From Styela clava (taxonomy: Eukaryota), in assembly GCF_964204865.1 (NCBI RefSeq), contig NC_135261.1:8680001-8744000 (forward strand): 64,000 nucleotides of DNA, given 5' to 3'. Positions within the stretch are counted from its first letter, which is position 1. Each line of letters opens with the position of its first letter. Position numbers and translations under genes: made by a program. This document shows, one piece after another, positions 92-63,926 of this stretch. Under the pieces are notes generated by a model. It worked only from the letters and a program-made list of their open reading frames with translations, was not told the origin of the DNA and ran no database searches.

Positions 92-884
92 CATCATCCT
101 TTGCCAATCTGTAGATACCTTCTCTCTTCTTTGTATAGTGGCCTGTAAAAGTTAGTGGAGGAGAACTAAAATACAAAGTTAGCAGTATATCATAATTACC
201 GTAGTTACATTCAGTCAACTTGTTTAATATTATTGTTATAACTGTATATTAAATATCATGAAATCCAATTTGAAATTTTGCTCATTTGAAGAAATGTTTT
301 ACTTCTCATGCGGTTCTGTAATCATCACACTCGCTCCTGTTCTTGTTTCGGTAAAATTCTGTTGTTTTGCACCACCTACATCCTTTCCCATCACTGCGTC
401 GTTAGTATTTAGAACCTGATTCCAGTCACCAGAAAACTGTCATTCGAAAAATACAATTACAACTAAACTACTTATATCACCAATCTGATAATATTCCTGG
501 CTTAAGGTGAGCTTCTAACGATTACTGATTCAACCAAGTTGTGGCTGGAAAACAACAGGATTCTATTTAAAGTCTGAATGTTTTCCCTAATGATATGTTA
601 AATTTATGTACAGTGATAAAGACATTGTCTTGTGAAAAAACAATGTTTTTTACACATGGAAGAAATATAGGCTTTCATTTATTTTTATCCTGCACTCAAA
701 TGAGTTCAAAACTTTTGAATAACTGGAATTCAGAAGTTTTTATTGACTAGAATAATGTACCAACTTTATCCCAGTCAATATCTTCATTATCTTCTGGAAT
801 CTTGCAGTGTTTAGTCTGAATGAATTCGAAACTTTGAATCAACAACAATAGCAAAGTAAACCTGCCTCTTTTCAGGATGAACAT
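92..884 (-). CDS. Lipocalin-like secreted protein, copy A (class I); coding exons 1-3, remainder beyond the left edge
   Basis: Exons 884-765 (MFILKRGRFTLLLLLIQSFEFIQTKHCKIPEDNEDIDWDK), 436-303 (FSGDWNQVLNTNDAVMGKDVGGAKQQNFTETRTGASVMITEPHE), 165-92 (NSPPLTFTGHYTKKREGIYRLAKDD). All GT-AG, phases 0,2,1. The window starts at the sequence that abuts the exon-4 acceptor in paralogs. Confidence 0.88.
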
Positions 885-1243
885 CTTCTTTCTATCCTAG
901 TTGAATGTATTTCAAAGAAGAACACTGGAATAAGAATTAATTGTTGCCAATTATCATCACAGCAGTTTCTAGTATTTCTGAGAATAATTTGAAGATTTCT
1001 ATTGAATATCATGTGGTTTCATCTACATTCACATGTTTCTGAAACTAATAGAATTGAAAAATTATTCTATTCTGTTGACATTGCAGCTAGCACTCAAGTG
1101 TGACAAACTTAGTGTATATGAGTGTATATAAATACACAAATGAAATTATGCCTGTTAGTGGTTACTTGGTAGCATAAAAACATCAACCTGTATCCCACGC
1201 AATCTGCTTTAAACTGTTTGTGACAAGTCTTTGCTTCTGACAG

Positions 1244-1303
1244 TTTTATAGGCTTCGATAATCAATGTCTTGAAACAATCTTAATCCTAAATACATGACA
1301 TCA
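1244..1303 (-). promoter_or_regulatory. Conserved class I core promoter: TATAAAA plus an upstream CRE/AP-1-like TGA-C-[AG]-TCA site (copy A instance)
   Basis: Minus-strand TATAAAA at the homologous position upstream of A (1244-1250), B (8210-8216), E (20586-20592), F (29745-29751), H (36275-36281), I (41712-41718), J (49914-49920) and K (59123-59129). TGACATCA or TGACGTCA lies about 45 nt further upstream in most copies. Confidence 0.55.
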
Positions 1304-4768: not shown

Positions 4769-7700
4769 CTATGGGTGTCCAACAGTTTCATAAGGATAAA
4801 GTTGAACAATGATTCTTTTCTCAATGAGCTTGTTCCACATCAAACTTATTTGTTGGATTGTAGGATTCAATGTTGGAAATGTTGCCCAGACCACCCATTC
4901 ATCTGAAATGTATTGAACCAGCGATTAATCTGGAGTTTGCGAGTATGAGGAGATGAATCTTAGGCTTCAAAATCATGCTTGTGCTTGCTATGGCTTGGTG
5001 GTTACCTTTATCTATGGTTGTTATTAAGTATGGTTTCAATAACTATGTTGCCAGGGGTGTTCAACATTTTTTGTCGGTTGGCCATATACAGTAACCAAAT
5101 TGAGATATTTAGCTGGATCACACGAAAATTTATTGTTTCCATGTACACAACGTATTGAAATATTCTCACAATGCAAAACTTCATTTATTTAACATTTTAA
5201 CAGGACACTGGACTGGTCATACAATACTGTATGTATTTTGCTCACATGAGCGCTTTTTCAAATAATCTGTTGTATCAGGATTTATACGCTTGATGGGTGA
5301 AAATCTGACTGTTGACAAGGGTCACACTTGGCTTGGCGGGCAGGTTTTGCCCGGCCCTGTTGCACACCCCTAATCTAAACAAAGAACTCATGGATATTTA
5401 TTTAGAGCAGGGCTGTGCAACCTGCAGCCCGTGGCCCACAATGAAAAATTGGATAGGTTAGGGCTAGGGTGACATTACAACAGCAAAGCGATTTACAAAG
5501 CTTTCACTTGCTGAGCAGCGAAAATATCATATTCAGAATTGTAGTTTTAAATACCTTCAAGGCTACAAAATGCATGAATCATGTAGTTCTTCTCATCGCT
5601 TAGTATCAATATATCACCACTAAATAGTGCTTCGTCTGAATAAAAATTGAGCAATGCTCAAATATATATTGATAGAACGAATAGCCCTCCAACAGCAAAA
5701 ATGTCTGCTAAATGTTGTACATAGTTATGTTTCAAATACCATATGTGTTTCCATGAATTTGGGAATGCAAGATTTGAGTGGATATAAGATTGAACGCAAG
5801 ATTTGAGTGGATATCATCCTTTGAATGGACCTGGGAAATTTGTTGATATAAAATAGTAAATGTGATATTATTGTGATTGTCTCAGTCTTATGTACTGAAC
5901 AACAGCTGAAATTGAGTGAAACGATCTATAGGTCCACCTCGTGCCCAAAAATTAGACATATTATACCATTTAGCCTATTAGCCTTTGCAATTCAAGAGTC
6001 CTGCTGCACCAAAAGTTTACGTTGTAAACTGCTTTCTGAGAAGTCTGATTTTGGTCAGACGAATTGTGACAGAAATACATTTGTGTTAGTGTGCAGCAGG
6101 ACTCTTGAATTGCATAGTATGGTATGTTTATTCATGCCAAAGCATCCTTGCATAATATGCATACGGATCCACTAGCGCAACGGCATTGAGGAAGGAATGG
6201 GATTTCTCTACTGATAGGTATGTTCCCCTATTAGAACTGAGAGTTTTGTCAGATCTTACCTATTTTCATAGCTTTCTCATTTATGCTGCCATCTGGTTTC
6301 AATGCTTCTAGAACCAACACAGCCGCTTCTGTACCAAATAATAAAAATCCTCATATCATGAGTTAGTTTTACCCAATTTAATTTCGATTTACCAGTAGTA
6401 ATGAAAATGATGTACCTTCACTCTTTTCTGGTCTATAAACACCAGCTCGTTGTTTGGTCATATGGAGTGATGTCGTTCGTGCAGGAGAACTGAGAAACAA
6501 ATTTTGGGAAAACAAATATCTAAGTGAATATTAATATATGTGTGAAGTTTGTAATTATCATTTGATGAGCTCCCATTCTACTGAAGTTTTATCGAGGTCA
6601 AAAATGTGATATACCGGTAATGTTCACTCACTTTTTGTTCAATTCTGTGATCACATATTGCACTCCTGTGCTTGTTTTAGTGAAATTCTCTAGCTTTCCC
6701 CCCAAGAAATCTGTCGTCATCCCTGCGTCATCTGTAAGTCCATCATACCAGTCATCATGAAGCTGTCAAAAATAGTATTATTAACTCATGAAAAACATTT
6801 GCTTGTCTGATTCGGTTGTCGATAATGTTCAAGGAAAAAAAAGGATGTGAGTTCACATCATCCAAGTAACACTTTGTGGAATTTGCATCATTTTATTGTG
6901 AAGCTTTGCTACTAATATTGTATATGTATGTATATTGAAGTTGCTGTAAAATATTTGCCAGATAGAAAAAAGAAAAAGTACACATGCTAGTGTTATTTAT
7001 CTGATAATATTACCGCAATATGTTTATTTTCAACACATAAACATTGGGTTGATAATTCTAATTCAAACAAATGTTGACAGACAACAACATGCTTCCACTT
7101 GGCGTCTAATTATTTTCTATGTTATATATACCATATATCCTCACATATAAGCCAACCTCCCAAAAGACTTTGAAATAGTAAATTTATAAAAATTCGCATG
7201 TAAGCAGACTCTACAATTCGTATCACGGCATACACACCTATTACATTCAATGATATTCAATTCGAATTAAATATTCGAATATGGCTATTCGCTACCTTCT
7301 AGTATAATTGACTGTGGTTATATTACCGTATACCCTCGCATAGAAGCCAAACCCGCATATAAGCCAACCCCCTAAGAACGAATTTATAAATATTCGCATA
7401 TATAAGCGGACCCTAAAAATTGTAACACTTATTAATAACAGCACACATACTTTTTGACACAGCTAATTTTTATTATATATTCCAATTGTCTATTGTCAGC
7501 GCCAATGTCATTTAGTTCATCGACATCGTTAAGCTAAACGCCACAAGACCGAAAATCTCGTTTTATTTTTCAATTCATTGTTTTTGCTCATAAATTAATA
7601 CTGCCGAATTGAATGATGTTGTCATCAACGTAGCTGGGATAACGATAAAATCCGCGATACTAAACAATATTCAGGTGCTCCCGTATAAATATTCAATCTG

Positions 7701-7877
7701 GAGTTACAAATCAAATTAATTAAAAGTTTGAAACTTAAAGAATGTGCCAACCTTATCCCAGTCAATATCTTCATTATCTTCTGGAATGTTGCATTGTTTA
7801 GCCTGAATGAATTCAAAACTTTGAACCAACATCAGTAGAAAAATGTATCTGCTGTATCTGCTGTTGAAGATGAACAT
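4769..7877 (-). CDS. Lipocalin-like secreted protein, copy B (204 aa, chimeric class I/II, slightly early stop)
   Basis: Exons 7877-7752, 6762-6632 (LHDDWYDGLTDDAGMTTDFLGGKLENFTKT...), 6489-6416, 6328-6260, 5635-5555 (DEALFSGDILILSDEKNYMIHAFCSLE), 4902-4769 (DEWVVWATFPTLNPTIQQISLMWNKLIEKRIIVQLYPYETVGHP*). Frame open throughout, GT-AG junctions. Confidence 0.87.
5052..5372. mobile_element. hAT-like MITE in intron 5 of copy B
   Basis: Ends caggggtgttcaac ... gttgcacaccccta form imperfect TIRs. TSD not clear. Confidence 0.55.
7129..7420. mobile_element. pogo/Tc1-like terminal fragments (two tandem left ends) in intron 1 of copy B
   Basis: taccatatatcctcacatataagccaacc and taccgtataccctcgcatagaagccaaacccgcatataagccaacc resemble TA-CCGTA...TATAAGCC termini of pogo-type elements. 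Confidence 0.5.
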
Positions 7878-9521: not shown

Positions 9522-11177
9522 TCACGATTTAAAACCCATGAAATTCTCTGGATGTTCAACTGCTTCTGCAAGATGAAGTTGTACATTGATTCCTTTTTCC
9601 ATGAGTTCGTTCCACATCATGGTGACTTGAGGAATTGTTGGATTCATAGTTGGAAAGCCAGCCCAGACAACCCATTCATCTGAAATATATTTCAAATTGG
9701 ATTTAATAAATGATGCAGAGGTTAAGTGCTGAGACTAAGATGCTGATATACTGTACTTTTTGTGTTTAATAGGCAATACAACCAGAATCAAATTGAGATA
9801 TTCTAAAATAATTTTGAGTGACAGCGCTTTTTGTTTAACACAAACAGACTTTTATGAAAAGACATTTTACATGCTGTAAGTTCAAACATATTCATGGTGC
9901 GTGTTGAGCTTTATTACACTACATTTGCTGAAACAGCTCAAATACTCCGACATTCACTGTAGTTTTATAATTACCGTAATTTTGAATACCCAACTTTGAT
10001 TTATCATTGTTTGTAAATATTGGCAACACAGTGGTAGAGTGAGGTTTTTCATTTATTGTTAATAGGAACATAGAGGGATTGTGACAATATATTGCAATGT
10101 GATGGCCTGTAATTCCAAGCATTTTTATATATGTGTATACCTGAAAGACTGCAAAATACATTTATCAAGTAATTCTTCTCATCACTTAAAATCAAAACAT
10201 CACCATTGAACATTGCATAATCTAAATATAAAAAATAAAGTTGCGAAGATTTAGGCAATAGCATTTCACATCTATAGGTAATAGTAATTTTACCGATTTT
10301 TGCTGCATCTTCACTTCTTCCACCCTTGGGTGTTAAGGTGTGTGACGTTAGAACAGCCGATTCTATTTGAAAATTGAAATTATACTTTTTTACTGATATA
10401 TTATGCAAATTTTCAATAGAAATTCACTAATTTATATAAAATATATACCATCACTCTTTTTGGGCTCATAGACACCTGCTCTCTTTGTTATCAAATGAAC
10501 TGTCATAGTTTGAGGATGAGAACTAAAATATAAAGGTTGCATTGAATCATAGTTAGCTCCATTTTTAGTCTAATATTTTTTTCTATTTAATATTCATTTA
10601 AAGTTTAACTAGGTCACCATTACTTGAACTTGAATAGGAATTTTGGTCTTTTGAATAAAATATCTAACTTCTGATGTAGTTCTGTGATCATCATGCTCAC
10701 TCCTGTTCTTGTTCTGGTAAAATTCCTGAGTTTTACGCCACCTACATCTTTTCCCATCACTGGATCATTGGTATGTAGAACCTCATACCAGGCATCAGGA
10801 AACTGCCAAAGGAGAGGCATAGTAAATGCACATGAATATAACTGATCTGATATTATTTTTGGGTTATGGCGATCTCAGCTTCTACAGATTATGATGATAA
10901 TACTGTTTCAAACAAATGTTGATTGATTTTACTTGATGTCTGATTTATTTGTGCTCATGCTAAACACAGCGTGTTGTAATATGTGATATTTCATCACACA
11001 TAAAATAAATATGATGGTTTATGTATTTTTAATCTAGAGTTACAAATCATATGAATTCAAAAGTTTTAATCCATTCCCACCTTGTCCCAGTCAATATCTT
11101 CATTATCCTCTTGAATCTTGCATTGTCTGAACCAACATCAATAATACAATAAACTTGCTCGTCATTAAGATGAACAT
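9522..11177 (-). pseudogene. Lipocalin-like copy C, frameshifted in exon 1
   Basis: Exon 1 11177-11081 is 97 nt (23 nt shorter than paralogs) and reads MFILMTSKFIVLLMLVQTMQDSRG*. Exons 10802-10669, 10522-10449, 10362-10294, 10221-10141 and 9679-9522 are intact with normal sizes and splice sites. Confidence 0.82.
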
Positions 11178-11830: not shown

Positions 11831-11910
11831 CTTATCCCAGTCAATTTCTCCAATGTTCTCTGAAATTTTGCATTGTTCTGCCTGGTTAATCTCGAAGCTC
11901 ATAGCAAACG
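11831..11910 (-). pseudogene. Orphan class II exon-1 remnant
   Basis: Translates FAMSFEINQAEQCKISENIGEIDWDK, then a GC donor (gcatgt). The signal-peptide N-terminus is deleted. Class II upstream sequence follows at about 11930-12230. Confidence 0.7.
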
Positions 11911-12704
11911 AAAAAAAATTTTTCTGATCTGCTAAATCTTAATTTTAAAAACTACATAAAATCTTTATCATAACCCCGAAAACTCTTCAAGTTTGTTTGT
12001 TTGTGCTCCATATATCTATTCGAGGGAGAACAATTAACATCCTTACTTATATGAGCAACAGTGCAGACTGTTTCTTGCAAAACTTGCATTCTGCTCATAT
12101 CTTTGTGCACATTATGTTATATTTTCAATGTGACAGAATGTGATACATATGATTTTTGTTTATTCTGTCTGGCTATGTGCAACATGCCTTGCTTCATGGC
12201 AGAGAGGGCTGAAAAAGTGATCAATATATTTTTAAAAGATATGGTGTTGGTGTACAATGTTCAAACCAGCTAATGGAATTGTTTGAAGTAAAAATCTTTG
12301 GGGAGTATAAGCTGATATATTTATTTTCAAGTTTGTCAATGAAGAAGGAAATGGTACTCCTTTGTGTAAAATGCGGTAACCATTCTAGTTTTCAAACCAG
12401 ATGCATCTTGTAACGAGAAAAGTTCCTGCTGCACAACAATCTTGTTGATTTCGAAGAGATATTTTTTAGAAATCAAAAAGAACACAAGTTATCCATTTTT
12501 TATTTAATAAATTGTTCTACATCCAAAATATGCAAATTTATGTTAAAATCAATATTTTATTAATAAACAATATCTTTGTTATTTGAGAAGTAATGTCATT
12601 TCAGTTGTATGTTTTCAGTAAAACAAAATTCCATTGTATGTATTTGGATAAAGAACGGAATACATGGATACATGAGACACCCAAATCTGAAATCCACTGC
12701 TTTT

Positions 12705-12796
12705 GCATGGTGAAGTTGTACATTGTTTCTTTTTTCCATTAGTTCGTTCCACATCAGGGACTTGATTAATTGTTGGATTCATAGTTGGAAAAAACA
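12705..12796 (-). pseudogene. Orphan exon-6 fragment with J-like 3' flank
   Basis: FFPTMNPTINQV..MWNELMEK..NVQLH with an indel and no acceptor. Flank 12450-12690 closely matches 46700-46945 downstream of copy J. Confidence 0.75.
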
Positions 12797-13506
12797 ATAA
12801 TTTTTGTGAAGATCATTTTTGTTTACACTGAGAATTAGCGGCAAAATACTGTAGCATTTGATAGCATAATCTCTGTCACTGTCACTCTGATTTTTGATGG
12901 TAAAATAAGAAATAAATTCTTGTCATTCCTGATGAAATTACTAATGTAACTCTAATATATTCCAAACAACTCCATCATATGATTAAACTGTATTGATATC
13001 ATAACCATAATCATTTGCTCAGGAATTTATATCGATTGGAGCCTAGAACGCATCAAAGCTTTTCTTGAAGCTTCACGCTTTACTGTCCAAAGACTACTTT
13101 CATTAAAACTTCTCAAAGTCATTATTGAAAATGATATAATTAGTCTGGATGAAGCAATTATTTCTATAGTTGTTCTTAAATGATGCATGGTGATTATAAA
13201 GTATGATGTGGTTTCAAATACTTGTGATTTAATAAGTTTATTTCAAATGTGTGTTTCAATGCAACCCAAAAATTTTTTTTTATCCAAGAATAAGCTTTTT
13301 AAATTTATACACCAATTCCAAGTTATTAGCCACTGTCCAAGCAACGCCTGTTACATTTCTTTTTTCATCAAAAGTTTCTGCAACTTGAAACAGTGCTGTA
13401 TATAACATTTTATTTCTGGTTAATATGTGGAGTAATATAAATCTGTATTATAATGTAGTTGGTGGTTGATTCAGGCTTTTATCTGCAATATCAATCATTT
13501 TCATCA

Positions 13507-16500
13507 TCATAAGTCTTCCATCAACTCTGGATGTACAACTGTTTTAGTAAAGTATAGTTGTACATGTATTCCCTTTTCCGTTAGTTTATTCCTCATTAGG
13601 TTGACTTGATAAATTGTAGGAGTTATGGCTGGAAACATTGCCCAGACAATCCATTCACCTGAGATATGTTAAGAATGCATATTAGGGGGATGAGATTTTG
13701 CAAATCATAACTGAAGTATATCTTTGAAGTAAATAGACTATAAAAGCTTAAAACAGGCAAGGAAATTCATCATTTACAACAGTATATCCTCTATAATTAG
13801 CTCTGTTTGTTCTAGCTTCTTTCAGATATGTTATTGTTCCAAAACAGTTGATGGTTCTCCAATTTGATGTTTGAATTATACATTGATTTTTAAAATAATT
13901 CATTTCAACAAGTGTTCACTAAAGAATACTTCAGTAAAGTCCATTATTCACTAGTCAGAATTGAAATGAAATATGAAAATATATCAATAATCAAGTGAAT
14001 TCAATATGTATGGAATCTATTTTATTTTCATTCACTGTAATTGTATTCGAACATTTTTCATATACAGGATTACCCCCAAAAAACGGAACTTATAAATTTT
14101 CTAGTAACTTTCATAAAAATGGAGTAATTCAATTGATTTTGTTTACACTTGAACCTCATGTTTGTGTATTCTGTTACCTGAAAATTTCTAGGACGTTCTG
14201 TACAAAAGTTATGTTCTCTCTAGAAAAACCCCTTAGGCATAGAAGATAGACTTGTAAATTGTCAATCCCCAACTCAGTTTTGTGCTAAATTTCACTTTTT
14301 CCTGTCTGCGTATGTCAATGGCAAAAATATTGATTGCCTGGGTACGACATCTCCGAAAAACGTTACACTCAATATAGTGTACAGCATGGAAAAATGGAAA
14401 GCCATTTCCAAACATTGTGTAGCTGGTTCATTGACTTGATGGCAAAAATGAAGTAGTGAATATTGAACATGTAGCGGTGCTGAGATAGTGCAGGGCATCA
14501 TTTGGGCAAAGTAGAGCGATTGATGGAGTTGATTATTGGTTTTAGCAAGACCCTCGGTTGCCCTCACCTCATCAAATCTTTGACTGTATAAGAAAGCGAT
14601 TTCAGAAAGGGTTGATCAGCAGGAAGTTTGGTGTCTGGGGAATATGATGGACAGTGTGTATCATAACATTCCCCAAACAATTGGTGGACTCAAAACTGCA
14701 ATTGCAACAAAAACTACAAAAATCCCCATAGCAGAGTGTGTGTGTAAGTGATTTGTCGACTTTGCGCAACATGTGCAAATATTCTAAATTGAACATAACT
14801 TTTGTGAAAGCGTCCTAAATTCCTGAAACTTCCAGGTACGATCATCCACAAACAGGAATTGAAGCATGAATAAAATCTAATGAATTTTTTCATTTCTGTT
14901 ATAGTTATTAACAAATTTACAGGTATGTGTTTTGTTTTTTGGGCACCCCGTACCAGTTTAATTTTAAGGTTTTATAACATAGACAATAATGTACCTGAAA
15001 GACTGCAGACTGCACGAATCAAATAGTTCTCTTCGTCACTTAGAACCAACATGTCATTATTGAATATGGCATCATCTGAATATAAAATATTCAATCTGTT
15101 GTTACTTAGAATAAGCAATTGAAATGTTCAATATCAACTTGATAATGGTTCTAAGTTCCTATAAATGCTGACAATTGCAATGCTAACTAACCTTCACACT
15201 CAATAGAAATATTACATTTTTGAGGCCTACTGACCTCCTATTTGGAGGCTTCACATAGCCACTGATCAGTTACAAATATTCAACATTTTAACTATCAGAC
15301 CTGATGAGATGCTGTGGACTGTGGTTCATTATATGATCAAGTCATTTCATTAGCATTTATTTTTTTTTGGATAGATATGCAAGTTCTCTGTCATTTTATT
15401 GAAAAAGGTTGGAAAAGGTTATTGAAAGGTTGGATCCACTTGAATGTGCCTTACCTACTTTTACTGCATCTTTATTCAAACTTCCATCTGCTAATAGGGC
15501 ATTTATAGACAGAGCCTCTGACTCTATACCAGAATGAGAATCAGCTTTTGGGTAAAGTGTTAAGTAACTTTTCTAAATGTTGATTATATGAAATTCATAC
15601 CTTGGCTCTTATTCGCTCCACAAACACCTGATCTTAGTTTGATACAATAAGCCTCCATTGTTTTGGGGGGAGAACTGAAAAATGAGATGTACCGTAAATG
15701 ATACAATAGAATATTATATTTAATTAACCAACATATTTGAGTAGATTCTGTAACTATGTATAATACAAATTTTCCCTGAAATAAGGCACATTCCCCAAAC
15801 ATAACATTCAGTTTCTCTGTTTATGTTCGTAACAGCGAGCAATAAGTCAACAATGATGATCAATTGAAACTTGTAGTACAGAATTTGTACAGCCGCTCCG
15901 ACGCTTGCTTCGTTCAGACAGATATTCAAGCATGGTGGTGAACATTCCCTCTTTTTCGCAGTTCAGCGTGTTATTTGTCAGTTTTCAGTTTGGTTTCAAA
16001 AATTAGTTGTGAATCAAATAACTTAATTGTATTTCGATGAGTTTCACTTTAGTTGCTATAATCAAAAATTAGTTCAGAAAATGGTGCCTTATTGCCATAA
16101 AAGCCTAAAAAAAATGTGGTTGAATATTTTTGCTTATTAAAATGCTGGTTCTGAACATATCAACCAGTTCATAAGCGCCAACTCTCCAAAGCGCTCACAA
16201 AATAAACATCAGAAATTTTGCAATAGCAAAGTACAGAAAAAAGTTTTTTGGGGTCAAGGGTTGGTCAAATATTCATAGACCTTGAAAACATCACTTTTTC
16301 AAACTTTAACTATGCAATAAACTAATATTCACTCACCTTTCGTAGAAACTTGTGATTAAAAATTTACTTCCAATCTTTGTTTTTGTGATATTCCAGATTT
16401 TTGAACCTATAACATCTGTTGTCGACAATGCGTATGTAGTCCTAGATACCAATCATTCGCAAACTGTCATTATGAAAATTAAATAAGATATATAAATCTT

Positions 16501-16934
16501 TTCAGTATTCACTTCAGTTTCCATCTATTATTGTGGGAAACTATACAAAAATTTAGCTTCACTAAAAAAATTGTAAAAATTTCATTTACCGTAACTAAAA
16601 CAGTGAATTTGACGAATTTCCTTCTGATTTTTATTTGAATTAAATTCTACATTATTCACTACTCTTCAAGATAAATGCAAGTTCTTCAATGTTTCGTTAT
16701 AAATGTAAACTCGTGAAAATAATATTTAAGAAAACTGAGAGAAGAGGCAAATGTTTTTTTTAATATCTGAAATACTTGAATTCAAGAAATTCATTGAAAG
16801 TAATTACCGGTACATACCTCATCCAAGTCGATGTCTTCATTGTTCTCTGGAATTATACATTCCTTTGCCTGGTTAATCTTGATGCTTATAACAAGCATCA
16901 AAAGTGATATACACATGTTTTTTAAGGTCTGCAT
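13507..16934 (-). pseudogene. Lipocalin-like copy D (class II), frameshifted in exon 2
   Basis: Exons 16934-16818 (MQTLKNMCISLLMLVISIKINQAKECIIPENNEDIDLDE), 16463-16337 (127 nt; about 7 nt missing after FANDWYLGLH, giving an early TAG), 15674-15601, 15523-15455, 15075-14995, 13658-13507 (GEWIVWAMFPAITPTIYQVNLMRNKLTEKGIHVQLYFTKTVVHPELMEDL*). Confidence 0.8.
14065..14950 (+). mobile_element. Decayed Tc1/mariner element with transposase C-terminal remnant, in intron 5 of copy D
   Basis: TA-flanked imperfect TIRs (caggattacccccaaaaaac / gttttttgggcaccccg). Frameshifted remnant GLISRK...WG.MMDSVYHNIPQTIGGLKTAI...IPIAECV at about 14610-14780. Confidence 0.72.
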
Positions 16935-18209: not shown

Positions 18210-20269
18210 TCATTCAAAACCCATGAAATTCTCCGGATGTTTAACTGATTCTAAAAGATGAAGTTGTACATTGATTCCCTTTTCCATGAGTTTGTTCCAC
18301 ATCAAGGTGAGTTGGTTGATTGTTGGATTCATAGTTGGGAAAACTACCCTGACAACCCATTCATCTGAAATATATTTGGACAACTAATAAACAGTGTGAA
18401 GGAGATTTTCTGGCATGACTTTTATTGGGAAATACGCTAGTAATATTACTACAATAAATTCATAGAATATATCAATTTATCATACCTTGCCCTTCTCTTT
18501 TCCAAGCATTCCATTTTTCAGGGCATATACGGTATATTTATAACGAATAAGCCGAATAGATCACAGTAACAGTGGGCCGCCTTTATTTTGAGATTGATTC
18601 ATTCAAGTCATGTTTGTTTGTAAACAATCTCCTCATGGCAAGTTTTGACATTTGTGTGAAGCAGTGAAGGATAGTAACAATATATTGCAATTAGGTATAG
18701 TTGCAGTATTAGTATAGTATTTATATATACCTGAATTAATGCAGAATACATTTATTTGGTAATTCTTCTCATCACTTAATATCAAGACATCGCTGTTGAG
18801 CAGTGCATCATCTGAATATCAAAAAATGAAGATATAATATAGCATTCTAACTTGAAAAGGTCCAAAAATTTTACCGAATTTTATTGTATCTTCACTTGTT
18901 CTACCTTCCGGTGTTAAAGATTGTGAGGCGATCATAGCTGGTTCTGTTTGAAAATTCAAATAACTTTTATTATTCAGCAGGAATGTTATACATATTTTAC
19001 TCCAAGGATATTACTAAATATACCATCACTCTTTTCCAATCTGTAGATACCTGCTTTCTTCTTGTTATAGTGGACTGGAAAAGTTCGTGGAGGTGAACTA
19101 AAATATTAAGTTAGCATTATATCATGAATAGTTACAGTCAATTTATTAATATAAGACTGGATTGTCCAACCTTTTTGGCCAAATGGCCACATTCAGTTTA
19201 CGAATGATTGTGCTGGCCATTTGACATGGTTGTTATGTTCTAGTTTTCACTACACCGACTACAGATTAATGAATAAACAACCAAAACCTTCGCAAAAATT
19301 ATGAAAACAATGAAAATACGAAGATACTGGTAAATCAAAAGTTTTTGCCACATATAGATATTTTAATGTCAAGTATGACACTGCTTTTATCCAATAAGTT
19401 CGTCAATATTCGGTGCGATGGAAGATGTAGCAATGCGGGGGCAATGTAACAATCGGAAACCTTCGTCGGGCCACAGGTTGGACGACCCTGATATTGAGAC
19501 CTAATTTGACTGATTCAGAATTGTGTAAACTGTCTCTCATGTGAAAAATATCCTACCCCTTATGTAGTTCTGTGACCGTTTTGACCATTCCTGTGCTTGT
19601 TTTGGTGAAGTTCTGTAGTTTTGCACCAAATACACTTTTATCCATTACCGGGTCATCAGTGTGGAGAACCAGATACCAATCATCAGGAAACTGTCAATAG
19701 AGAAGTACATGAACATAACTGATCTCTTTATATTCTGTGATTGATGTATCTTCTGAAGATAGGGCGATAATTTCAATTCCAACAAAGAAAACAAATACTG
19801 ATTGATGCAATATATATATGCTTATGCTAATCACACAGATTTGTATAATACTAATGTTTTGTTGCAGAGAGATATATCATATTTTGAGGCACACTATATA
19901 TCCCCCTTTTTCTGCAAAAATATATTGTGCTTCTTATAAGCCAGTGTGCCGAATGTATGGTTCGGGTAGTACTTTATGCTATATTGTCTATACTCAAAAC
20001 CAGTACCAATTGTGTCTTATTATAGCATGTGTGAGCTTATGTATGGACGAAAACCCAAACTAAATAATTATTGTTTATTCACCTTAATAAGGTCTGTAAA
20101 ATATGGAAATGTATTTTTGGTCGGCATTTACAGGAAAGAATGTACTCACATTATTCCAGTCAATGTCTTCATCATCCTCTGGAATGTTACATTGTTTAGC
20201 CTGAATGAATTCAAAACTTCGAACAAACATCAATAGCAAAATATACCTGTTGTTTTCCATGATGAGCAT
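18210..20269 (-). CDS. Lipocalin-like secreted protein, copy E (class I, 210 aa)
   Basis: Exons 20269-20150, 19690-19557 (FPDDWYLVLHTDDPVMDKSVFGAKLQNFTKT...), 19097-19024, 18943-18875, 18811-18731, 18364-18210. Open frame, GT-AG. Confidence 0.9.
19157..19490. mobile_element. hAT-like MITE in intron 2 of copy E
   Basis: TIRs ctggattgtccaacct / aggttggacgaccctg and a degenerate atataaga TSD. Absent from the homologous intron of F, I and K. Confidence 0.72.
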
Positions 20270-21435: not shown

Positions 21436-21502
21436 CTGAAAGGCTGCAGAATGTATGAATCAAATAGTTTTCTTCATCACTTAGAACCAACATGTCATTA
21501 AT
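21436..21502 (-). pseudogene. Orphan D-like exon-5 fragment
   Basis: NDMLVLSDEENYLIHTFCSLS followed by a GT donor. The first codons and the acceptor are missing. Confidence 0.72.
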
Positions 21503-21619
21503 ATTCATACCTATAAACTGTAACTCCAAGTAGACTAGCTTCGCTCCATCCATTTTGATAATAAATCTTTCATAAAAGATATTGGTCATAAATTTTCAGG
21601 ACAATATTAACAAGTCAGT

Positions 21620-35181: not shown

Positions 35182-35246
35182 GTATAAGACCTAATGTGAC
35201 TGATGCAGAATTGTGTAAACTGTCTCTCATGTGAAAAATATCCTAC

Positions 35247-38700: not shown

Positions 38701-40822
38701 TCATCTATTGAAACCCATGAAATTCTCTGAATGTTTAACTGATTCTGAAAGGTAAAGTTGTACATTTATTCCCTTTTCCATGAGTTTGTTCCACATCAGG
38801 GTGAGTTGCTGAATTGTTGGATTCATAGATGGGAAAAACACCCAGACGACCCATTCATCTGAAATACATTGGTACAGGTTACAATCAACAATGCAGTGGG
38901 AAAATTTTACATGTCATTTTATGGTATAAATGCTGGCGACATTACTATAATAACTTTATGGACAATATCATCAGTAGCCATATAAAGTTGTAAACCACTG
39001 ATTTATCAGAATTGCCGATTGAGGAAGATCCGAAATAAAATTTGGTGTAAAATTATATCACACAAAGATATTTCTTCTTTGATTGAAAAAAACCTCAATA
39101 ACGATTGTGGAATCAGTGAAAAATATGAAGCTGCAACTGTTGATTGTAATCCAGCAAGAGTATGTGTATACTTCTCATACTGTTTATTTGTCTCGAAAAT
39201 GTAACAGCATCTGAATAATAATTATCAGAAAGACATATTCAAGACCTTACTTTCCCGAACACAGCTGTGCGACATGTACCCTTCACATGCGTAACAACAA
39301 GTTAAGGACTGCTGCATTTTACTAGGACAAAATACATGAGATAAAATAAATATACAATGAAAACTTAAGTGTGATACACAAGACAGAAAGGAACAGATTG
39401 ACAACTTACAGCGGTCTGTTAATTGCACGGTCATGTCCCAGGTTCAGATGTGAAAAGATGAGAGTAGGGTATGAATCGTTCATTCATTTTTTTTACAATC
39501 AATATTACGAATGACTTGAAAATTTGTTCTGGACATGTACCAATAAGGGAAGGCATATTCTCTTTTCTCACTTTGAATCAATCATAAAACAAATTCAACA
39601 CTGTTGTGAGATGATATACGAGCCACAATGCAATTTATTAAACGACATTTTGCTGTTAACGACACACAATGTTTAGTTTTTCAAATGCCTTACGGTGTTG
39701 TGCATTGCACAATTGGAGCGATGTTTCAATTCCAGCATATCACACCTTAAAAGATACTACCTGCACTCTTGATCACAGTTGCTTTAGTTTAGAACAATGC
39801 TCATTACTAATGCTCCTACCATAGTTTCGTTGCATAAGATGGCGATACAGTATTTATTTATATACCTGCATAGCTGCAGAATGCATAAATTATATAATTC
39901 TCCTCATCACTTGAAATCAGAAGATCACCACTGAACAGAGCATCATCTGAATATCAAGAAATAGAAATATAGAATGAAGATCAAATAACATTCTACCTTA
40001 AACAACTTTCAATATCAATTTTACCTATTTTTGCTGCATTTCCACTTCTTCCACCCTCTGGAGTTAAAGTTTGTGATGCTTCGAGAGCTGGTTCTGTTTT
40101 CGAAAAAATTTCATTTTTCTGACTAGAATATTATGCCAAATTTAATTAAAAAGATAATTCAAAATATATACCATCATTCTGTGCCAATCTGTAGATACCT
40201 GCTTTCTTCCGTGTATCGTGAACTACAAAAGTTTGTGGAGGAAAACTAAAATATAAAGTTAGCATTATATCATCATTAGTTATAGTTAGTCGATTTATTA
40301 ATATAAGACTTAATTTGACTAATGGAGCATTGTGTTAAGCATTTCTCATTTGAAAAATATCCTACTTCTTGTGTAGTTCTGTGACAATCAAGTTCACTCC
40401 TGTGCTTGTTTTAGTAAAATTGTGTACTTTTGCACCAAATACATCTTTATCCATTACTGGATCAAATGTGTGGAGAACTTCGTACCAGGCTTCAGGAAAC
40501 TGTTATTTGAGAAGCATAGTAAATATACATAAATATAAGTGATCTGATAATATTCTTTATTATGGTGAGCTTTTAAAGATTGGGCAACAATCAATTAAAA
40601 CAAAGAAAACACATCTGATTGCTTAGCAAATGTATACATGCTAATGCTAAGTACAAAAATTTTTTAGAAAGTTTGAAATTTATAGAATTTACCGGTACTC
40701 ACATTATCCCAGTCAATATCTTCGTTATCTTCTGGAATGTTACATTGTTTAGTCTGTATGAATTCAAAACTTTGAACCAACATCAATAACAAAATGTACC
40801 TGCCCCTTTTTAAGATAAACAT
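38701..40822 (-). CDS. Lipocalin-like secreted protein, copy I (class I, 211 aa)
   Basis: Exons 40822-40703, 40499-40366 (FPEAWYEVLHTFDPVMDKDVFGAKVHNFT...), 40245-40172, 40093-40025, 39946-39866, 38858-38701. Open frame, GT-AG. Confidence 0.9.
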
Positions 40823-46964: not shown

Positions 46965-48633
46965 TCATTCAAAACGCTTGAAAATCTCTGGATGTTCCAC
47001 TGCTTCTGCAAGGTGAAGTTGTACATTGATTCCCTTTTCCATGAGTTTGTTCCACATCAGGGTGAGTTGCTTAATTGTTGGATTCATGGTTGGAAAAACC
47101 ACCCAGACAACCCATTCATCTGAAACATATTTCAAATTCGTTTTACGGAATGTTTCATAAGGGAAATGCGAAACATTCAATTCAATATTTGGTTAAAGAT
47201 TAGGTAATGAAGGCAACCAACATATACCGGTATATATATATATATATATGTGTCTGAGTGGTGCCCGAGCAGTAAAAAGCAACATTTTCTGCATCACATA
47301 TAATATTACTTCTTAAGTTTGTATTTCTTGCTACAGTAGTTTTCTATGCAGTTTTTTCACTGCAGAGTGATGAAGTAGGGTTTCACAAAATTATTCAAAT
47401 AATAAGTGTAGCTTAGAATGAGCATGCACTAAGATAATATATTGTAATGCAATATTATATAAGTCGAAATATGGCTAAGTACTGGTATGTCGCTACCTGA
47501 AGGACTGCAGAATGCGTATATTATGTAATTCTTCTCATCACTTAAAATCAAAATATCAGCATTGAACAGTGCAAGATCTAAATATCAATGAATAAAAGGT
47601 ATCGGATGAAGTTTAGGGAAATAGCATTTTACATGAATAAGTTAACACTCTTTACCTAATTTCATTGCATCCTCACTTGTTCCACCGTCTGGTGTTAAAG
47701 TTTGTGATGCTAGAGCAGCTTGTTCTGTTTGAAAATTCAAATAACTCTTTTTTACTGCACTGTTTTGCCCATTTTGATTTGCAATTGAAAAATTAATAAA
47801 ACAAATATACCACTACTCTTTGCCAATTTATAAACACCTGTTCCTTTCTTCCTCCAAAGGGCTGCGTAAGTTTGTGGAGAAGAACTAAAATATTAAGTTA
47901 TCAGCATATCATAATTACCGTAGTTATATATAGTAATTTATTATTGACATATTTTATTTAATTATTGATATATTAATTTACTCTTAAGTCAACTATTGTA
48001 CAATTTCGTTCATGAACTTTAATGTAAATTATTGTACATTCGAAAAAATCACTGACTTCTTGTGTAGTTCTGTGACCACTGCTCGCACTTCTGTGCTTGT
48101 TTTGGTAAAATTCCACAGCTTTGTACCATATACGTTATTTGTCATTACTGGATCATTGGTGTGTAGAACCTCATACCAGTCGTCGGTGACCTGACAGAAG
48201 AAAAACATAATAAATGTGCATGAATGAATGACTGATTCAATAATATTGCTGGATTATGGTGATCTTTTGAAGATTGCCATGATAATTCTGATTCAAACAA
48301 ATTTTACTTGACAACAACAGGATTCTACTCGATGGCTAAATGTTTTCCTGAATTAATTGTTCAATATATACATATAAGGATAAATATACGGTCTCATAGA
48401 ATACTAAAATTTCCTTACAAATGAAATTTATATGGAATATTTTGTGATTTTAATTTTAGAGTTACAAATGTGATGAATTCAGAAGTTTTAAATGTCTAGA
48501 AGTATGTACTGACCTGATCCCAGTCAATATCTTCATTATCCTCTGGAATGTTACATTGTTTAGTCTGAATGAATTCAAAACTTTGAACCAACATCAATAG
48601 CAAAATGTACCTGCCCCTATTTAAGATAAACAT
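46965..48633 (-). CDS. Lipocalin-like secreted protein, copy J (210 aa)
   Basis: Exons 48633-48514, 48190-48057 (VTDDWYEVLHTNDPVMTNNVYGTKLWNFT...), 47884-47811, 47724-47656, 47577-47497, 47119-46965. Open frame, GT-AG. Confidence 0.9.
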
Positions 48634-55000: not shown

Positions 55001-57490
55001 TGCACAAATCACTGGGCTTGTGCTCATTTGATATAGTAATAAACCTGCTGAAAGTATTCATAAAAGTAGCAAATTTTTTGTGTCTTCGTGCTTATTTGAG
55101 ATGTGATCTTTTGAACTTTCAGAAATTGGCCCTTAATGTTTTTAGTCATCAAACTTCATTAGCTTTCAGTTGTCACCCAAAATCTATTAGCGTACATGCC
55201 AGACCAAAAAGTTGACAATTTTGCAGAGAATTTCCAAGTTATGTGAAATCACTTTGTCATAGCTGTTTTCTTACGGTATTGTCATAAAGTATATAAATTT
55301 TTTTCAGAGATTAAATCTCTTTGTTTTTGAGTGAGTGCGTGTGACTTCCCTTTGAGTGAATTTTAACTAAAAAACTGTTTGAGTTTAGGTTTATAGATAC
55401 CACTCATCTATACCGTTGAAAAATAGCTAGTACTTGTATTTAGGAACAACGGGGAGTAAGATTAATGATCACAGCTAGATATGCTTCTAGTATGGATTTA
55501 AAGATTCTTATTTGAAGTATCACGATAATTGAAAGTGTTGCATCAGATGAGTTGACAATAATTTACAAATACATCAGAAATCTTTGCACTTTGATGGCTA
55601 CTTACAATATTACCCCTGAGTGACTTCAACTTACTATTTTGTGACTTTTGAATTTTGTCAACCTTAATGAAAACATTAATCATGAAAAGAACGAGAGACT
55701 GGATAGATTTTTTGTTGCACGTTCTACCTTTAATAAATTAATTTAGGAACATTTTCAAGGCTTGTGACATATATGCAAAATTTTTTTCTCCGTGTTGTTG
55801 CTGCTCTATGTTAATAAACAGTAGTTGATTTATAAATTTACTTATTTTGATGACAATCTGAAATGAATTCTTCTCACATCCACAATTTTTATTGATGAAT
55901 TAACAGGCAAATATATAGGGATAAAATGGACATAACATTGCTGATTATATAAGTTGATGTAGAAGATGAATACATGATACACATAATAATAACTGCAGTT
56001 TTGTACTGATTTTCATCTATTAAAAACCCATGAAATTCTCTGGATGTTCAACTGATTCTGAAAGATGAAGTTGTACATTGATTCCTTTTTCCATGAGTTT
56101 GTTCCACATCAGGGTGAGTTGCTGAATTGTTGGATTCATAGATGGGAAAACCACCCAGACAACCCATTCATCTGAAATACATTGGTACAGTTTAGAATTG
56201 AGACTGCAGTGGGAAAATTTTACATGTCATTTTTTGGTAAAAATGCTGGCAACATTACTATAATACATTTATAGACTATATCATCAGTAGCCATAAAAGA
56301 TTGAAAACCACTGATTTATTATAATTGAGGAAGATTCAAAATAATGTGGTGTGAAATTATATCACAGAAAGATATTTCTTCTTCGAGTGACAAAAAATTA
56401 ATAACTTATCAGCAAAAAATATGAAGGTGCGATTGTTGATTGTAATCCAGCAAGAGTACTCGTATGTGTATACTTCTCATACTGTTTATTTGCCTCAAAA
56501 ATGTAACAGCATCTGGATAATAATACTCAGAAAGACATATTCAAGATCTTACTTTTCCGGACACAGTTGTGCGATATGTACCCTTCACATGCGTAACAAC
56601 AGTTTAGGACTGCTGCATTTTACTAGGACAATAGACATGAAATAAATATACAATGAAAACTTAGGTGTGATACACAAGACAGAAAGGTACATAATGACAG
56701 CGTACAAAAGTCTGTTAATTGCACATCCATGTCCCAGGTTCCGATGTTAATAAATGAGTGTAGGGTATGAATCGTCCATTGATTTTTTTTACAATTAATA
56801 TTACAAATCACATGAAAATTTGTTTCAGACATGTACCAATAAGAGAAGGTGTATCGTCTTTTCTCACTTTGAAGCGATCATAAAATAAATTCAACACCGG
56901 TGTGAGATGATATTCAAGCCACAATGCAATTTATTAAACGACATTTCGCTGTTAACGACACACAATATTTATTTCTTCAAATGCCTTACGATGTTGCGCA
57001 TTGCACAATTGAAGCAATGTTTTAATTCCAGCATATCACATCTCAAGAGATACTAGGTGCATTCTTGATCACAGTTGCTCTAGTTCAGAACAATGCTCAG
57101 ATACTAGGTGCAATCTTGATCACAGTTGCTCTAGTTCAGAACAATGCTCATTACTATTGCTCCTACCATAGTTTTGTTGCATAAGATGGCGATACAGTAA
57201 TATTTATATACCTGCATAGCTGCAGAATGCATAAATTATGTAATTCTCCTCATCACTTGAAATCAGAAGATCACCACTGAACAGAGCATCATCTGGATAT
57301 CAAGAAATAAAAATATAGAATGAAGATATCAAATTACATTCTACTTTTAATAACTTTCAATACCATTTTTACCTATTTTCGCTGCATCTTCACTTCTTCT
57401 ACCCTCTGGAGTTAAAGATTGTGATGCTTGGAACGATGGTTCTGTTTGAAAATTCGAATAAATCTCATTTTTCTTATTAGAATATTATTA
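52058..57490 (+). repeat. Segmental duplicate of about 59636-64000 (K versus L downstream regions and 3' exons)
   Basis: Near-identical colinear sequence and duplicated ORF-track entries, e.g. 53833/60746 and 54862/61819. Confidence 0.9.
52386..53057. mobile_element. piggyBac-like MITE, 672 bp
   Basis: TTAA TSD on both sides and TIRs ccctttccatgcg / cgcacggaaaggg. Empty TTAA site at 59961 in the duplicated block. Confidence 0.9.
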
Positions 57491-58223
57491 AAATAAAAGT
57501 TAGCTCAAAATATATACCATCATCCTTTGCCAATCTGTAGATACCTGCTTCCTTTTTTGTATAGTGGACTGTAAAAGTTTGTGAAGGAGAACTAAAATAT
57601 AAAGTTAACATTATATTGTAATTAGTTACAGTTAGTCAATTGATTAATATTAGACTTAATTTGACTTAGCAATATGTTAACTATCCCTCATGTAAAAAAT
57701 ATCCTACTTCTTGTGTAGTTCTGTGACCATCTTTTGCACTCCTGTGCTTGTTTTGGTAAAATTGTGTAGTTTTGCACCAAATACATCTTTATCCATTACT
57801 GGGTCAAAAGTATGTAGAACTTCGTACCAGGCATTAGGAAACTGTCAGTGGATGAGGCATAATGAATGTACATGAACATAACTGTTTTGATTATATTCTT
57901 CAATATAGTGAGTTTTCAAAGATGGGCGATAATTTTAATTTAAACAAAGAAAACAATTCTCATTGATAAACGAATTTATATATGCTTATGCTAAACACAT
58001 TGATTTATATAATACTAATGTTTTGTTACAGAGAGATAATACCATGTTTTTATTCTACTTCACAAAAGTCTTCAAAAGTTATGAATTTCAAGAATTTACT
58101 CACATTATCCCAATCAATATCTTCGTTATCTTCTGGAATGTTGCATTGTTTAGTCTGAATGAATTCAAAACTTTGAACCAACATCAATAGCAAAATGTAC
58201 CTGCCACTATTTAAGATAAACAT
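56020..58223 (-). CDS. Lipocalin-like secreted protein, copy K (class I, 209 aa)
   Basis: Exons 58223-58104, 57841-57708, 57591-57518, 57441-57373, 57292-57212, 56171-56020 (ends ...HPENFMGF*). Open frame, GT-AG. Confidence 0.9.
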
Positions 58224-62000: not shown

Positions 62001-62920
62001 CCTGCTAAAAGTATTCATAAAAGTAGCAAATTTTTTGTGTTTTTGTGCTTATTTGAGATGTGATCTTCTGAACTTTCAGAAATTGGTCCTAAATGTTTTT
62101 AGTCATCAAACTTCATTAGCTTTCAGTTGTAACCCAAAGTCTATTAGCGTACATGCCAGACCAAAAAGTTGACAATTTTGCAGAGAATTTTCAAGTTATG
62201 TGAAGTCACTTTGTCATAGCTGTTTTCTAACTGTATTGTCATGAAGTATATAAACTTTTCAGAGATTAATTCTCTTTGTTTTTGAGTGAGTGCATGTGAC
62301 TCTCCTTTGAGTAAATTTGAACTGAAAAACTGTTGAGTTTAGGTTCATAAATACCACTCATCTAAAAACGTTGAAGAATTGCTAGTACTTGTAGTTAGGA
62401 ACAAAGGGGTGTTAAAATAATATTCACAGCTAGATATGCTTCTAGTATTGATTCAGTGTACCATTATAATTGAAAGTGTTGCATCAGATGAGCTATTCAA
62501 CAGTTGAATAATTTATAAATTCATCAGAAATCTTTGCACTTTGATAGCTACTTACGACATTACTATTTTGTGGCTTTTGAATCTTGTCAACTTTGAAGAA
62601 AGCATTAATCATGGAAAGAACGAGAGACTAGATAGATTTTTTATTGCAATTATTACCGTTAATAAATAGATTCCGAAACATTTTCAAGGCTTATGACATA
62701 TATGCAAAATTTTACTTTGCATTGTTGTTGTTGCATTGTTGCATAGTTGATTTTTAAATAAATTTTTTTGAATATTGTCTGAAATAAATTCTTTTCACAT
62801 CCACAATTTTTATTGATGAATTAACAGGCAAATATATTGCAAACATTGCTGATTATATAAGTTGATGTAGTAGATAAATACATGATAGACATAATTATAT
62901 CTGCAATTTTCATAGAATTT

Positions 62921-63926
62921 TCATCTATTAAAACCCATGAAATTCTCTGGATGTTTAACTGATTCTGAAAGGTAAAGTTGTACATTGATTTGTTTTTCCA
63001 TGAGTTTGTTCCACATCAGAGTGAGTTGCTGAATTGTTGGATTCATAGATGGGAAAGCCACCCACACAACCCATTCATCTGAAATACATTGGTACAGGTT
63101 ACAATTAAGACTGCAGTGGGAAAATTTTACATGTCATATTTTGGTGAAAATGCTGGCAACATTACTATAATAAATTTATAGACCATATCATCAGTAGCCA
63201 TAAAAGGTTGAAAACCACTGATTTATTAGAATTGCCGATTGAGGAAGATCCAAAATAATGTGGTGTGAAATTATATCACACAAAGATATTTCTTCTTTGA
63301 CTGACAAAAACCTCAATAACGATTGTGGAATCACAATCAATATTAGGAATCACATGAAAATTTGTTCTAGACATGTATCGATAAAAGAAGGCGTATTCAC
63401 TTTTCTCACTTTGAAGCAATCATAAAGCAAAATTATCACTGTTGTGAGATGATATACAAGCCACAATGCAATTTATTAAACAACATTTTGCTGTTAACGA
63501 CACATAATTTTTGGTTCTTCAAATGCCTTACGATGTTGCGCATTGCACAATTGAATCGACGTTTTAATTCCAGCATATCACATCACACCTCAAAAGATAC
63601 TACCTGCACTCTTGATCACAGTTGCTTTAGTTTAGAACAATGCTCATTACTATTGCTCTTACCATAGTTTCGTTGCATAAGATGGTGATACAGTATTTAT
63701 TTATATACCTGCATAGCTGCAGAATGCATTAATCATATAATTCTCCTCATCACTTAAAATCAGAAAATCACCACTGAACAGAGCATCATCTGAATATCAA
63801 GAAATAAAAATATAGAATGAAGATCAAATAACATTCTACTTTTAATAACAATTTTACCTATTTTCGCTGCATCTTCACTTCTTCCACCCTCCGGAGTTAA
63901 AGATTGTGATGCTTTGATAGCTGGTT
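62921..63926 (-). CDS. Lipocalin-like copy L; coding exons 4-6, 5' exons beyond the right edge
   Basis: Exons 63926-63858 (EPAIKASQSLTPEGGRSEDAAKI), 63789-63709, 63078-62921. Open frame. Confidence 0.86.

Follow-up and report, generated by a model that had tools for sequence, protein, structure and literature searches.

Introduction

Lipocalin genes of chordates have been described in several settings against which a new locus can be compared. The lipocalin genes of amphioxus and the vertebrate ApoM and Ptgds genes have six coding exons with intron phases of 0, 2, 1, 1 and 1 (PMC3184775). In Ciona a single lipocalin was detected, the outgroup LCN_Cint, and an ApoD-like ancestor has been proposed in early chordates (PMC8420045). 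Published phylogenies show one tunicate lipocalin and a family expansion in the vertebrates. Here we describe a 64,000-nt stretch of the genome of the tunicate Styela clava (C16:8680001-8744000 of the assembly, NC_135261.1; hereafter the window), which contains the greater part of a tandem array of small six-exon genes. A preliminary description, made from the DNA sequence alone, had read these as ApoD-type lipocalin genes of an organism that was apparently an invertebrate, as is indeed the case. The analysis makes it highly probable that this is a lipocalin array; we hold the functional details with less confidence. The Styela genes would represent an independent and very large ApoD-like expansion.

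Array anatomy and gene structure

The window has a G+C content of 32-34% and contains no N. Stop-to-stop segments were translated and clustered without a prior model, and this yielded six recurrent peptide classes, all from the minus strand. A blastn analysis was then carried out using the six exons of gene B (58223..56020), which was read base by base and has a product of 209 aa, and the exon boundaries were projected onto the matches. The gene B exons were re-found on the minus strand throughout the window (E 1e-5 to 1e-76) and are the same six exon classes as those obtained by clustering, as the preliminary description had it. An AG acceptor and a GT donor are present at every intron in every intact copy. 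Exon lengths are identical in nine genes (120, 134, 74, 69, 81 and 149 nt plus the stop codon), and the intron phases, read directly and confirmed in these nine genes, are 0, 2, 1, 1 and 1. Conservation of such an exon-length and splice pattern cannot be attributed to chance.

Seven complete genes (B, C, D, F, G, I and L), two genes cut by the window edges (A and M), three damaged units (E, J and K) and four orphan exons were found in the window, reproducing the count made previously. The limits given for the array at that time were exact, since exon 3 of gene M has its 3' end at position 92 and exon 4 of gene A its 5' end at position 63926; the peptides quoted came from gene G (29428..25203). 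The order of the units, from right to left, is A, B, C, D, E, an orphan exon 1, F, G, an orphan exon 5, I, J, an orphan exon 6 with a degenerate exon 1, K, L and M (Table 1). In the right flank gene A is completed no more than 0.7 kb past the window edge, and in the left flank exons 4 and 5 of gene M are followed by one further intact gene, N, that ends 3.6 kb past the window. No related exons were found in the next 10-20 kb beyond the array on either side, and no exon-6 matches were found elsewhere on the same chromosome before 15.77 Mb. The array had been expected to continue past both edges; it does so only as far as these partial units and gene N, and it therefore contains 13 units, all on the minus strand, over approximately 68 kb (C16:8.676-8.745 Mb).

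The array was previously called hidden, which is correct for an open reading frame (ORF) track but not for gene prediction, as RefSeq models exist. Our models of genes C, G and I are identical to RefSeq proteins, and RefSeq models also match genes A, F, K, M, N and probably D. A search with a RefSeq protein found through a reading frame of gene K returned a dozen S. clava entries named 'uncharacterized protein', none with a Pfam domain. The part that was missing is the family assignment. Using HMMER, P0001 (the RefSeq protein matching gene K) was compared with 1.84 billion representative proteins, and 26 relatives were found at E<=1e-3. All of the relatives with a species name were S. clava 'uncharacterized protein' entries, and of the other five, which carry no species name, three came from Logan assemblies, one from ENA and one from JGI/IMG. 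No description of the array family was found in the literature on lipocalins in Styela or tunicates. Full-length searches and structure predictions were carried out with database proteins, of which P0004 and P0006 (full length) and P0007 (over 210 aa) are identical to the window models.

Sequence evidence for a lipocalin family

A family profile was built from an alignment of 29 members and run against all PDB sequences. This gave 65 matches at E<=10, and all 60 of the 60 listed were lipocalins. The best matches were DigA16/bilin-binding protein (2.5e-7), bilin-binding protein (BBP; 1.9e-6), ApoD (4.3e-6), crustacyanin (4.5e-6) and Sandercyanin (7e-5), with beta-lactoglobulin, allergen lipocalins, major urinary proteins (MUPs) and RBP matching more weakly. 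In the hidden Markov model (HMM) alignment, the Cys that follows the signal peptide is paired with the first Cys of ApoD, the W-Y of strand A with its counterpart, and the later part of the proteins with the TDYENY...C and C-terminal helix plus N-I-D-V of ApoD, where the Styela family has G-I-N/S-V. These are the correspondences with ApoD that had been proposed from the sequence.

The proteins were compared with the structurally conserved regions (SCRs) of lipocalins. At SCR1 (G-x-W) the Trp, W45, is invariant in 29 of 29 members and the following Tyr is present in 90% or more, but the Gly occurs in only some copies. SCR2 (T-D-Y-x-x-Y) is found at the F-G turn, with D146 invariant and Y150 in 90% or more of the members; its form is S/C-D-E-E/K-N-Y in the array and T-D-Y-x-N-Y in distant paralogues, and it aligns with TDYENY of ApoD. 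Two cysteines, described earlier as invariant and equated with the C8-C114 disulfide of ApoD, both align with cysteines of ApoD and BBP; C156 is in fact invariant, but C27 is present in 90% or more of the 29. C27-C156 would be the counterpart of the ApoD bond. The array lacks the second ApoD disulfide (C41-C165), with Gly in place of the strand-B Cys and the C-terminal Cys missing; distant Styela paralogues keep both of these cysteines. The N-F-T sequon noted on strand B lies at position 67 and is kept in all mature proteins of the array. The products of 204-211 aa begin with a basic n-region and a hydrophobic I-L-L-L-M-L-V core before the first Cys, a segment with low predicted local distance difference test (pLDDT) values, and the mature proteins are acidic (isoelectric point 4.5-5.2).

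Predicted structure

An AlphaFold2 (AF2) model of P0004, the product of gene G (model m8f59dd0f0e08), was obtained with the family alignment as input and had a pLDDT of 89.5 and a predicted template modelling score (pTM) of 0.83. A second model, of an intronless paralogue with 27% identity, had a pLDDT of 87.4 and showed the same order of strands and helices. In both models strands A-H, helix A1 and strand I are predicted to form an eight-stranded barrel with a C-terminal helix. A Foldseek search of the PDB with the P0004 model gave 335 matches at E<=1e-3, and the best 50 were all lipocalins; C8-gamma and amine-binding tick or bug lipocalins were among the matches. VIA-align likewise listed 50 matches, all of them lipocalins, with Z-scores of 15.0 for Sandercyanin, 14.6 for ApoD, 14.6 for crustacyanin, 13.9 for bilin-binding protein and 13.6 for RBP4; PGDS was at rank 50 with a Z-score of 12.6. 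The alignments ran the full length of lipocalin chains and included 150-160 residues; with ApoD, 154 of 166 residues were aligned with a root-mean-square deviation of 3.1. In ESM-Atlas features the nearest named clusters were almost all lipocalin-type families. The calycin-type barrel with a C-terminal helix that had been anticipated is thus what was predicted.

Both models also contain two helices that follow a short strand E and precede strand F (approximately residues 107-117 and 127-138 in P0004), in a block with a pLDDT of 85-96. None of the VIA-align matches listed aligns more than 161 of the approximately 188 modelled residues, which fits an insertion of about 30 residues that is unmatched in these lipocalins. 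Four loops, the E-F loop among them, lie at the open end of the calyx (Flower 1996, anticalin literature), and from this position we infer that the predicted E-F helix-loop-helix of about 30 residues may serve at the mouth of the pocket as a lid or as an extended binding surface.

Several points weigh against the assignment to the lipocalins. No Pfam family was found for any exon peptide or whole array protein, and no NCBIfam model matched any array member. Among the 29 relatives only two, both distant paralogues, touch PF00061, at E of about 0.01. Scanning the genome in six frames with PF08212 also gave no match, a result that is little informative because exons are scored singly. The Gly of G-x-W is not conserved in the array, being present as S-G-x-W in genes G and M but not in B, C, D, I and K. 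The Arg of SCR3, a mark of kernel lipocalins, is not kept, and the Arg of ApoD and BBP is paired with a Pro of a conserved F-P-x-x-x-P-T. Finally, as most of their alignment rows are shared, the two AF2 models do not count as independent.

The failure of the Pfam lipocalin models, together with a weak Triabin match (E 0.018) in one distant paralogue, could be read as a sign of another calycin family, such as FABP, avidin, triabin/nitrophorin or a metalloprotease inhibitor, or of an unrelated beta-barrel that resembles lipocalins by convergence at the level of the fold. We give almost no credence to this explanation. Among the PDB matches listed, the sequence profile hits lipocalins exclusively; the match falls in two collinear blocks, which take in the N-terminal Cys, W-Y, TDYxNY...C and the C-terminal helix, and the VIA-align matches extend across full lipocalin chains. 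The gene structure is equal to the chordate lipocalin pattern and provides independent support. Lacking the SCR3 Arg and the second ApoD disulfide, and with the Gly of G-x-W in only some copies, the array proteins are best placed among outlier lipocalins. They are ApoD-like in profile, predicted fold and motifs, and to this extent the term ApoD-type was appropriate, but they do not appear to be ApoD orthologues. Relative E-values and Z-scores are what favour their nearness to the ApoD-like group.

Evolution of the array

The ratio of nonsynonymous to synonymous substitution rates (dN/dS) was 0.11-0.51 in pairwise comparisons, at synonymous divergences of 0.18 to >1, and the intact copies are therefore under purifying selection. 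In old pairs dN/dS was 0.11-0.26. The youngest pairs had values of 0.34-0.41 overall and, in exons 3-4, values of approximately 1 or above that are based on very few substitutions. These last values, and the visible damage to approximately one third of the units (E, J, K and M) in addition to the four orphan exons, are what might be seen if the array were largely a decaying relic, with most copies being unexpressed pseudogenes whose frames are open only through young duplications. Such an explanation is very improbable, since nine genes keep their splice sites, exact exon lengths and open frames across the whole range of synonymous divergence, since the ratios are low in old pairs, and since W45, D146 and C156 are invariant while C27 and N-F-T are kept in nearly all of the 29 divergent paralogues.

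Substitution densities were determined per exon, pooled over four independent pairs. Exons 3 and 4 encode strands D-E and the helical hairpin, and exons 1, 5 and 6 encode the N-terminus, strands F-H and the C-terminal helix. The nonsynonymous density per site was 0.177 in exons 3+4 compared to 0.088 in exons 1+5+6, with similar synonymous densities, and the ratio of nonsynonymous to synonymous differences per site (pN/pS) was 0.75 in exon 3, 0.57 in exon 4 and 0.31-0.33 in exons 1 and 6. As replacement is approximately twice as dense in exons 3-4, this suggests that the paralogues differ mainly around the ligand entrance while the scaffold is constant. The ratio of nonsynonymous to synonymous substitutions (N:S) did not differ significantly between exons 3-4 and the constant exons (Fisher p = 0.42). 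Positive or diversifying selection on exons 3-4 is accordingly not claimed, and we report the constraint around strands D-E and the hairpin as relaxed or heterogeneous.

Units were duplicated as whole blocks, with 83-91% identity between units across exons, introns and spacers; B is 83-90% identical to A and D 77-84% identical to B. Fragment E has 90.8% identity over 1.8 kb, and 99% over 300 nt, to the 5' part of the gene I region, and to judge by these values it is a recent partial duplicate of that part. In a phylogenetic tree two old lineages are interleaved within the array; gene F is nearer to genes on other chromosomes than to its array neighbours, and gene L pairs with P0053. The interleaved old lineages, the pseudogenes and the partial duplicates all point to birth-and-death rather than concerted evolution, as had been proposed, and the likeness to the rodent MUP cluster drawn at the same time is borne out by the 13 same-strand units, the duplication of units and the truncated and frameshifted copies. 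Long intergenic blocks on the downstream and upstream sides of genes were duplicated along with the units (53781-56405 and 60700-63320; 41147-43012 with 49822-51493 and 58591-58890). These blocks are 90% identical overall and 96-99% identical in some 300-nt stretches, compared to only approximately 83% for the gene bodies of B and A.

Family members elsewhere in the genome

A profile search of the whole assembly gave 154 matches. At least about 31 full-length intronless copies lie in single open frames, many of them in tandem clusters of their own (Table 1), and at least about 68 separate exon-6-type matches are distributed over at least 12 chromosomes. The family in S. clava probably numbers at least about 100 loci, and likely more; since 150 of 987 candidates were scored, with loci counted by hand from the listing, this figure is approximate and probably understated. 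The intronless clusters probably descend from retrogenes, in lineages in which the second ApoD-type disulfide was kept.

Proposed function

Each intact gene is predicted to produce a secreted acidic protein, in which the signal sequence would be followed by a Cys bonded to the Cys of strand G, and in which strand B would be glycosylated at N-F-T. The eight-stranded barrel, with its C-terminal helix and strand I, would hold a small and probably hydrophobic ligand. The helix-loop-helix, encoded mostly by exon 4, would take the place of the short E-F loop, at the barrel's open end, and provide the putative lid or binding surface. The array itself has grown by duplication of whole units and is decaying through truncation and frameshift.

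Lipocalins do not all carry endogenous small ligands, and tick salivary lipocalins, NGAL and C8-gamma are examples that act in scavenging or protein binding. It is possible, if rather unlikely, that the array proteins have the lipocalin fold but a role of this kind or in defence, for example in the sequestration of microbial siderophores or toxins or in binding macromolecules through the hairpin and the open-end loops; such a role overlaps with that outlined above. A large, lineage-specific expansion of about 100 or more loci, with fast divergence and birth-and-death turnover, is typical of families that face defence or the environment, and both the concentration of replacements around the pocket entrance and the presence of C8-gamma and amine-binding tick or bug lipocalins among the structural matches are consistent with it. 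However, the best sequence relatives, ApoD, bilin-binding protein and crustacyanin, are pigment and lipid carriers, and the N:S test did not show positive selection. We therefore retain carriage of small ligands by secreted lipocalins as the preferred explanation.

A wider proposal, which we put forward only tentatively and consider unlikely, is that Styela, or the styelids as a group, has a superfamily of >100 genes that is invisible to Pfam, composed of six-exon and retroposed intronless members, in which a hairpin-capped calyx serves as a diversified repertoire for small-molecule recognition, for example in chemical defence, in scavenging of microbial metabolites or toxins, or in handling pigments or metal-ligands; loci of the M/N type might share a terminal exon. 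If true, it would overturn the view of a single tunicate lipocalin and add a natural lidded lipocalin scaffold.

Individual units

The coordinates of the units are given in Table 1. The gene C model is 100% identical over its full length to P0006 (RefSeq LOC144430340, 'uncharacterized protein'). By exon matches the nearest database protein to gene D is P0050, and gene F corresponds to P0013. The gene G model is 100% identical over its full length to P0004 (RefSeq LOC120330064). Intron 1 of gene G (26778-29308) is 2.5 kb in length, compared to 0.2-1.0 kb in the paralogues. Since its resemblance to paralogue introns is limited to the first 160 bases, it probably holds an insertion; an ORF within it (27966-28319, minus strand) has no Pfam match. 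The gene I model is 100% identical over its 210 aa to P0007 (RefSeq LOC144430394), a 248-aa model with a longer N-terminus that begins at an upstream ATG.

Pseudogene J has all six exon classes in recognisable form, but its exon 2 is short by 7 nt, frameshifted and interrupted by stops. Gene K is 98% identical to P0001 (RefSeq LOC120330436), and a single stop-free frame that spans its exons 4 and 5 (window 10052-10423, minus strand) matches a Styela clava RefSeq protein. The RefSeq model of gene K takes as its start an internal Met in a degenerate exon 1 further upstream, and is without a signal peptide. As both candidate first exons are degenerate, gene K probably lacks a signal peptide and, although its exons 2-6 are open, it may be a pseudogene. 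The stop codon of gene L lies approximately 7 codons earlier than in the paralogues.

Exon 1 of gene M is matched by RefSeq LOC120330070 (P0017, 108 aa), and the gene has W-N on strand A in place of W-Y. Exons 1-5 are intact and have good splice sites (a GT donor follows exon 5), but no exon 6 belonging to the gene was found in the window or in its left flank. The next exon 6 on the strand of gene M is that of the complete gene N, 3.2 kb downstream (window 92-884 and left flank, window-equivalent -2..-3592), and the intron phases would permit this exon to be joined to exon 5 of M. Gene M may be a truncated pseudogene, or a locus with alternative cassettes and a shared terminal exon.

No second gene family was found inside the array, where nine long intergenic ORFs on both strands had no Pfam family, and no tRNA genes were found in the window. 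Tandem repeats in the window are small ones only; short near-perfect tandem duplications with periods of 76, 85, 87 and 51 nt, in 2-3 copies, are located at 34292-34518, 43794-43963, 44491-44664 and 57048-57150, in spacers and in intron 5 of gene B.

Table 1. Units of the Styela clava array, listed from right to left in window positions, and intronless clusters elsewhere in the assembly. E1-E6, exons 1-6.
Unit	State	Span	Strand	Exons and remarks
Gene A, E1-E3	beyond right edge; complete gene intact, 211 aa	window-equivalent 64704..64007	-	RefSeq LOC120330065 (P0012/P0010) matches exons
Gene A, 3' part	edge-cut	62921..64000	-	E4 63926..63858, E5 63789..63709, E6 63078..62921
Gene B	intact, 209 aa	56020..58223	-	58223..58104, 57841..57708, 57591..57518, 57441..57373, 57292..57212, 56171..56020
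Gene C	intact, 210 aa	46965..48633	-	48633..48514, 48190..48057, 47884..47811, 47724..47656, 47577..47497, 47119..46965
Gene D	intact, 211 aa	38701..40822	-	40822..40703, 40499..40366, 40245..40172, 40093..40025, 39946..39866, 38858..38701
Fragment E	E1 and E2 only	35247..35955	-	E1 35955..35836, E2 35380..35247; no E3-E6
Orphan exon 1	degenerate	33836..33955	-	without start codon or signal-peptide part
Gene F	intact, 210 aa, divergent lineage	30951..32687	-	32687..32568, 32335..32202, 32000..31927, 31852..31784, 31700..31620, 31105..30951
Gene G	intact, 211 aa	25203..29428	-	29428..29309, 26777..26644, 26524..26451, 26375..26307, 26226..26146, 25360..25203
Orphan exon 5		21436..21516	-	without AG acceptor
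Gene I	intact, 210 aa	18210..20269	-	20269..20150, 19690..19557, 19097..19024, 18943..18875, 18811..18731, 18364..18210
Pseudogene J	pseudogene	13507..16934	-	E1 16934..16818, E2 16463..16337, E3+E4 within 15820..15399, E5 15075..14995, E6 13658..13507
Orphan exon 6 fragment	frame broken	12665..12814	-	
Degenerate exon 1	signal-peptide part destroyed	11831..11896	-	first exon in RefSeq model of gene K (P0001)
Gene K	E2-E6 open	9522..11176	-	10802..10669, 10522..10449, 10362..10294, 10221..10141, 9679..9522; own E1 remnant 11176..11081 with stops
Gene L	open, 204 aa	4769..7877	-	7877..7752, 6762..6632, 6489..6416, 6328..6260, 5635..5555, 4902..4769
Gene M, 5' part	edge-cut	92..884	-	E1 884..765, E2 436..303, E3 165..92; E4+E5 2-228 bases left of window
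Intronless tandem clusters	outside the window	C1 7.10-7.14 Mb (7106080-7136757); C5 19.62-19.73 Mb (19618458-19734483); C4 7.82 Mb (7817763-7832456)		

Comparison with known lipocalin systems

The group of ApoD, bilin-binding protein, insecticyanin, crustacyanin and Sandercyanin gave the best sequence-profile and structure matches to the Styela family. Like members of this group, the Styela proteins have an N-terminal Cys followed after approximately 17 residues by W-Y on strand A, a T/S-D-x-x-N-Y...C on strands F-G with an equal D-to-C spacing, and a C-terminal helix, which is followed by G-I-N-V in Styela and by N-I-D-V in ApoD. They are likewise predicted to be secreted and glycosylated, with approximately 170-190 mature residues. 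They differ from ApoD in having Pro for the SCR3 Arg, in lacking C41-C165 in the array, in the predicted E-F helix-loop-helix of approximately 30 residues, and in being undetected by Pfam. Human APOD has four coding exons, compared to six in the Styela array, and there are dozens of paralogues in Styela as opposed to one or a few.

In number of coding exons and in phase pattern, the Styela array is the same as vertebrate ApoM and Ptgds and the Ambp/ApoM/Ptgds/Rbp4-like gene of amphioxus. In sequence and structure, however, the Styela family is nearer to the ApoD group than to Ptgds and ApoM, and PGDS and ApoM are not among the PDB profile matches listed. The head-to-tail arrangement on one strand, with pseudogenes, unit duplication and restriction to one lineage, is similar to that of the rodent MUP cluster and the tick salivary lipocalins. 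Unlike the MUP cluster, the Styela array belongs to another lipocalin clade and to a tunicate lineage, has a much lower identity between units (53-88% at the amino acid level), and is accompanied by intronless tandem clusters elsewhere in the genome.

These comparisons provide dozens of 'uncharacterized' Styela clava genes with a family assignment and a testable function, and indicate that counts of lipocalins in invertebrate chordates that rest on Pfam or BLAST are underestimates. The predicted hairpin at the pocket entrance could be of use in lipocalin scaffold engineering and in the study of ascidian chemical ecology, pigments and innate defence. The ApoD-like character of the family fits the model of an ApoD-like ancestor in early chordates. 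A single lipocalin was detected in Ciona, compared to about 100 or more loci of this divergent family in Styela clava (PMC8420045 for Ciona and the ancestor model).

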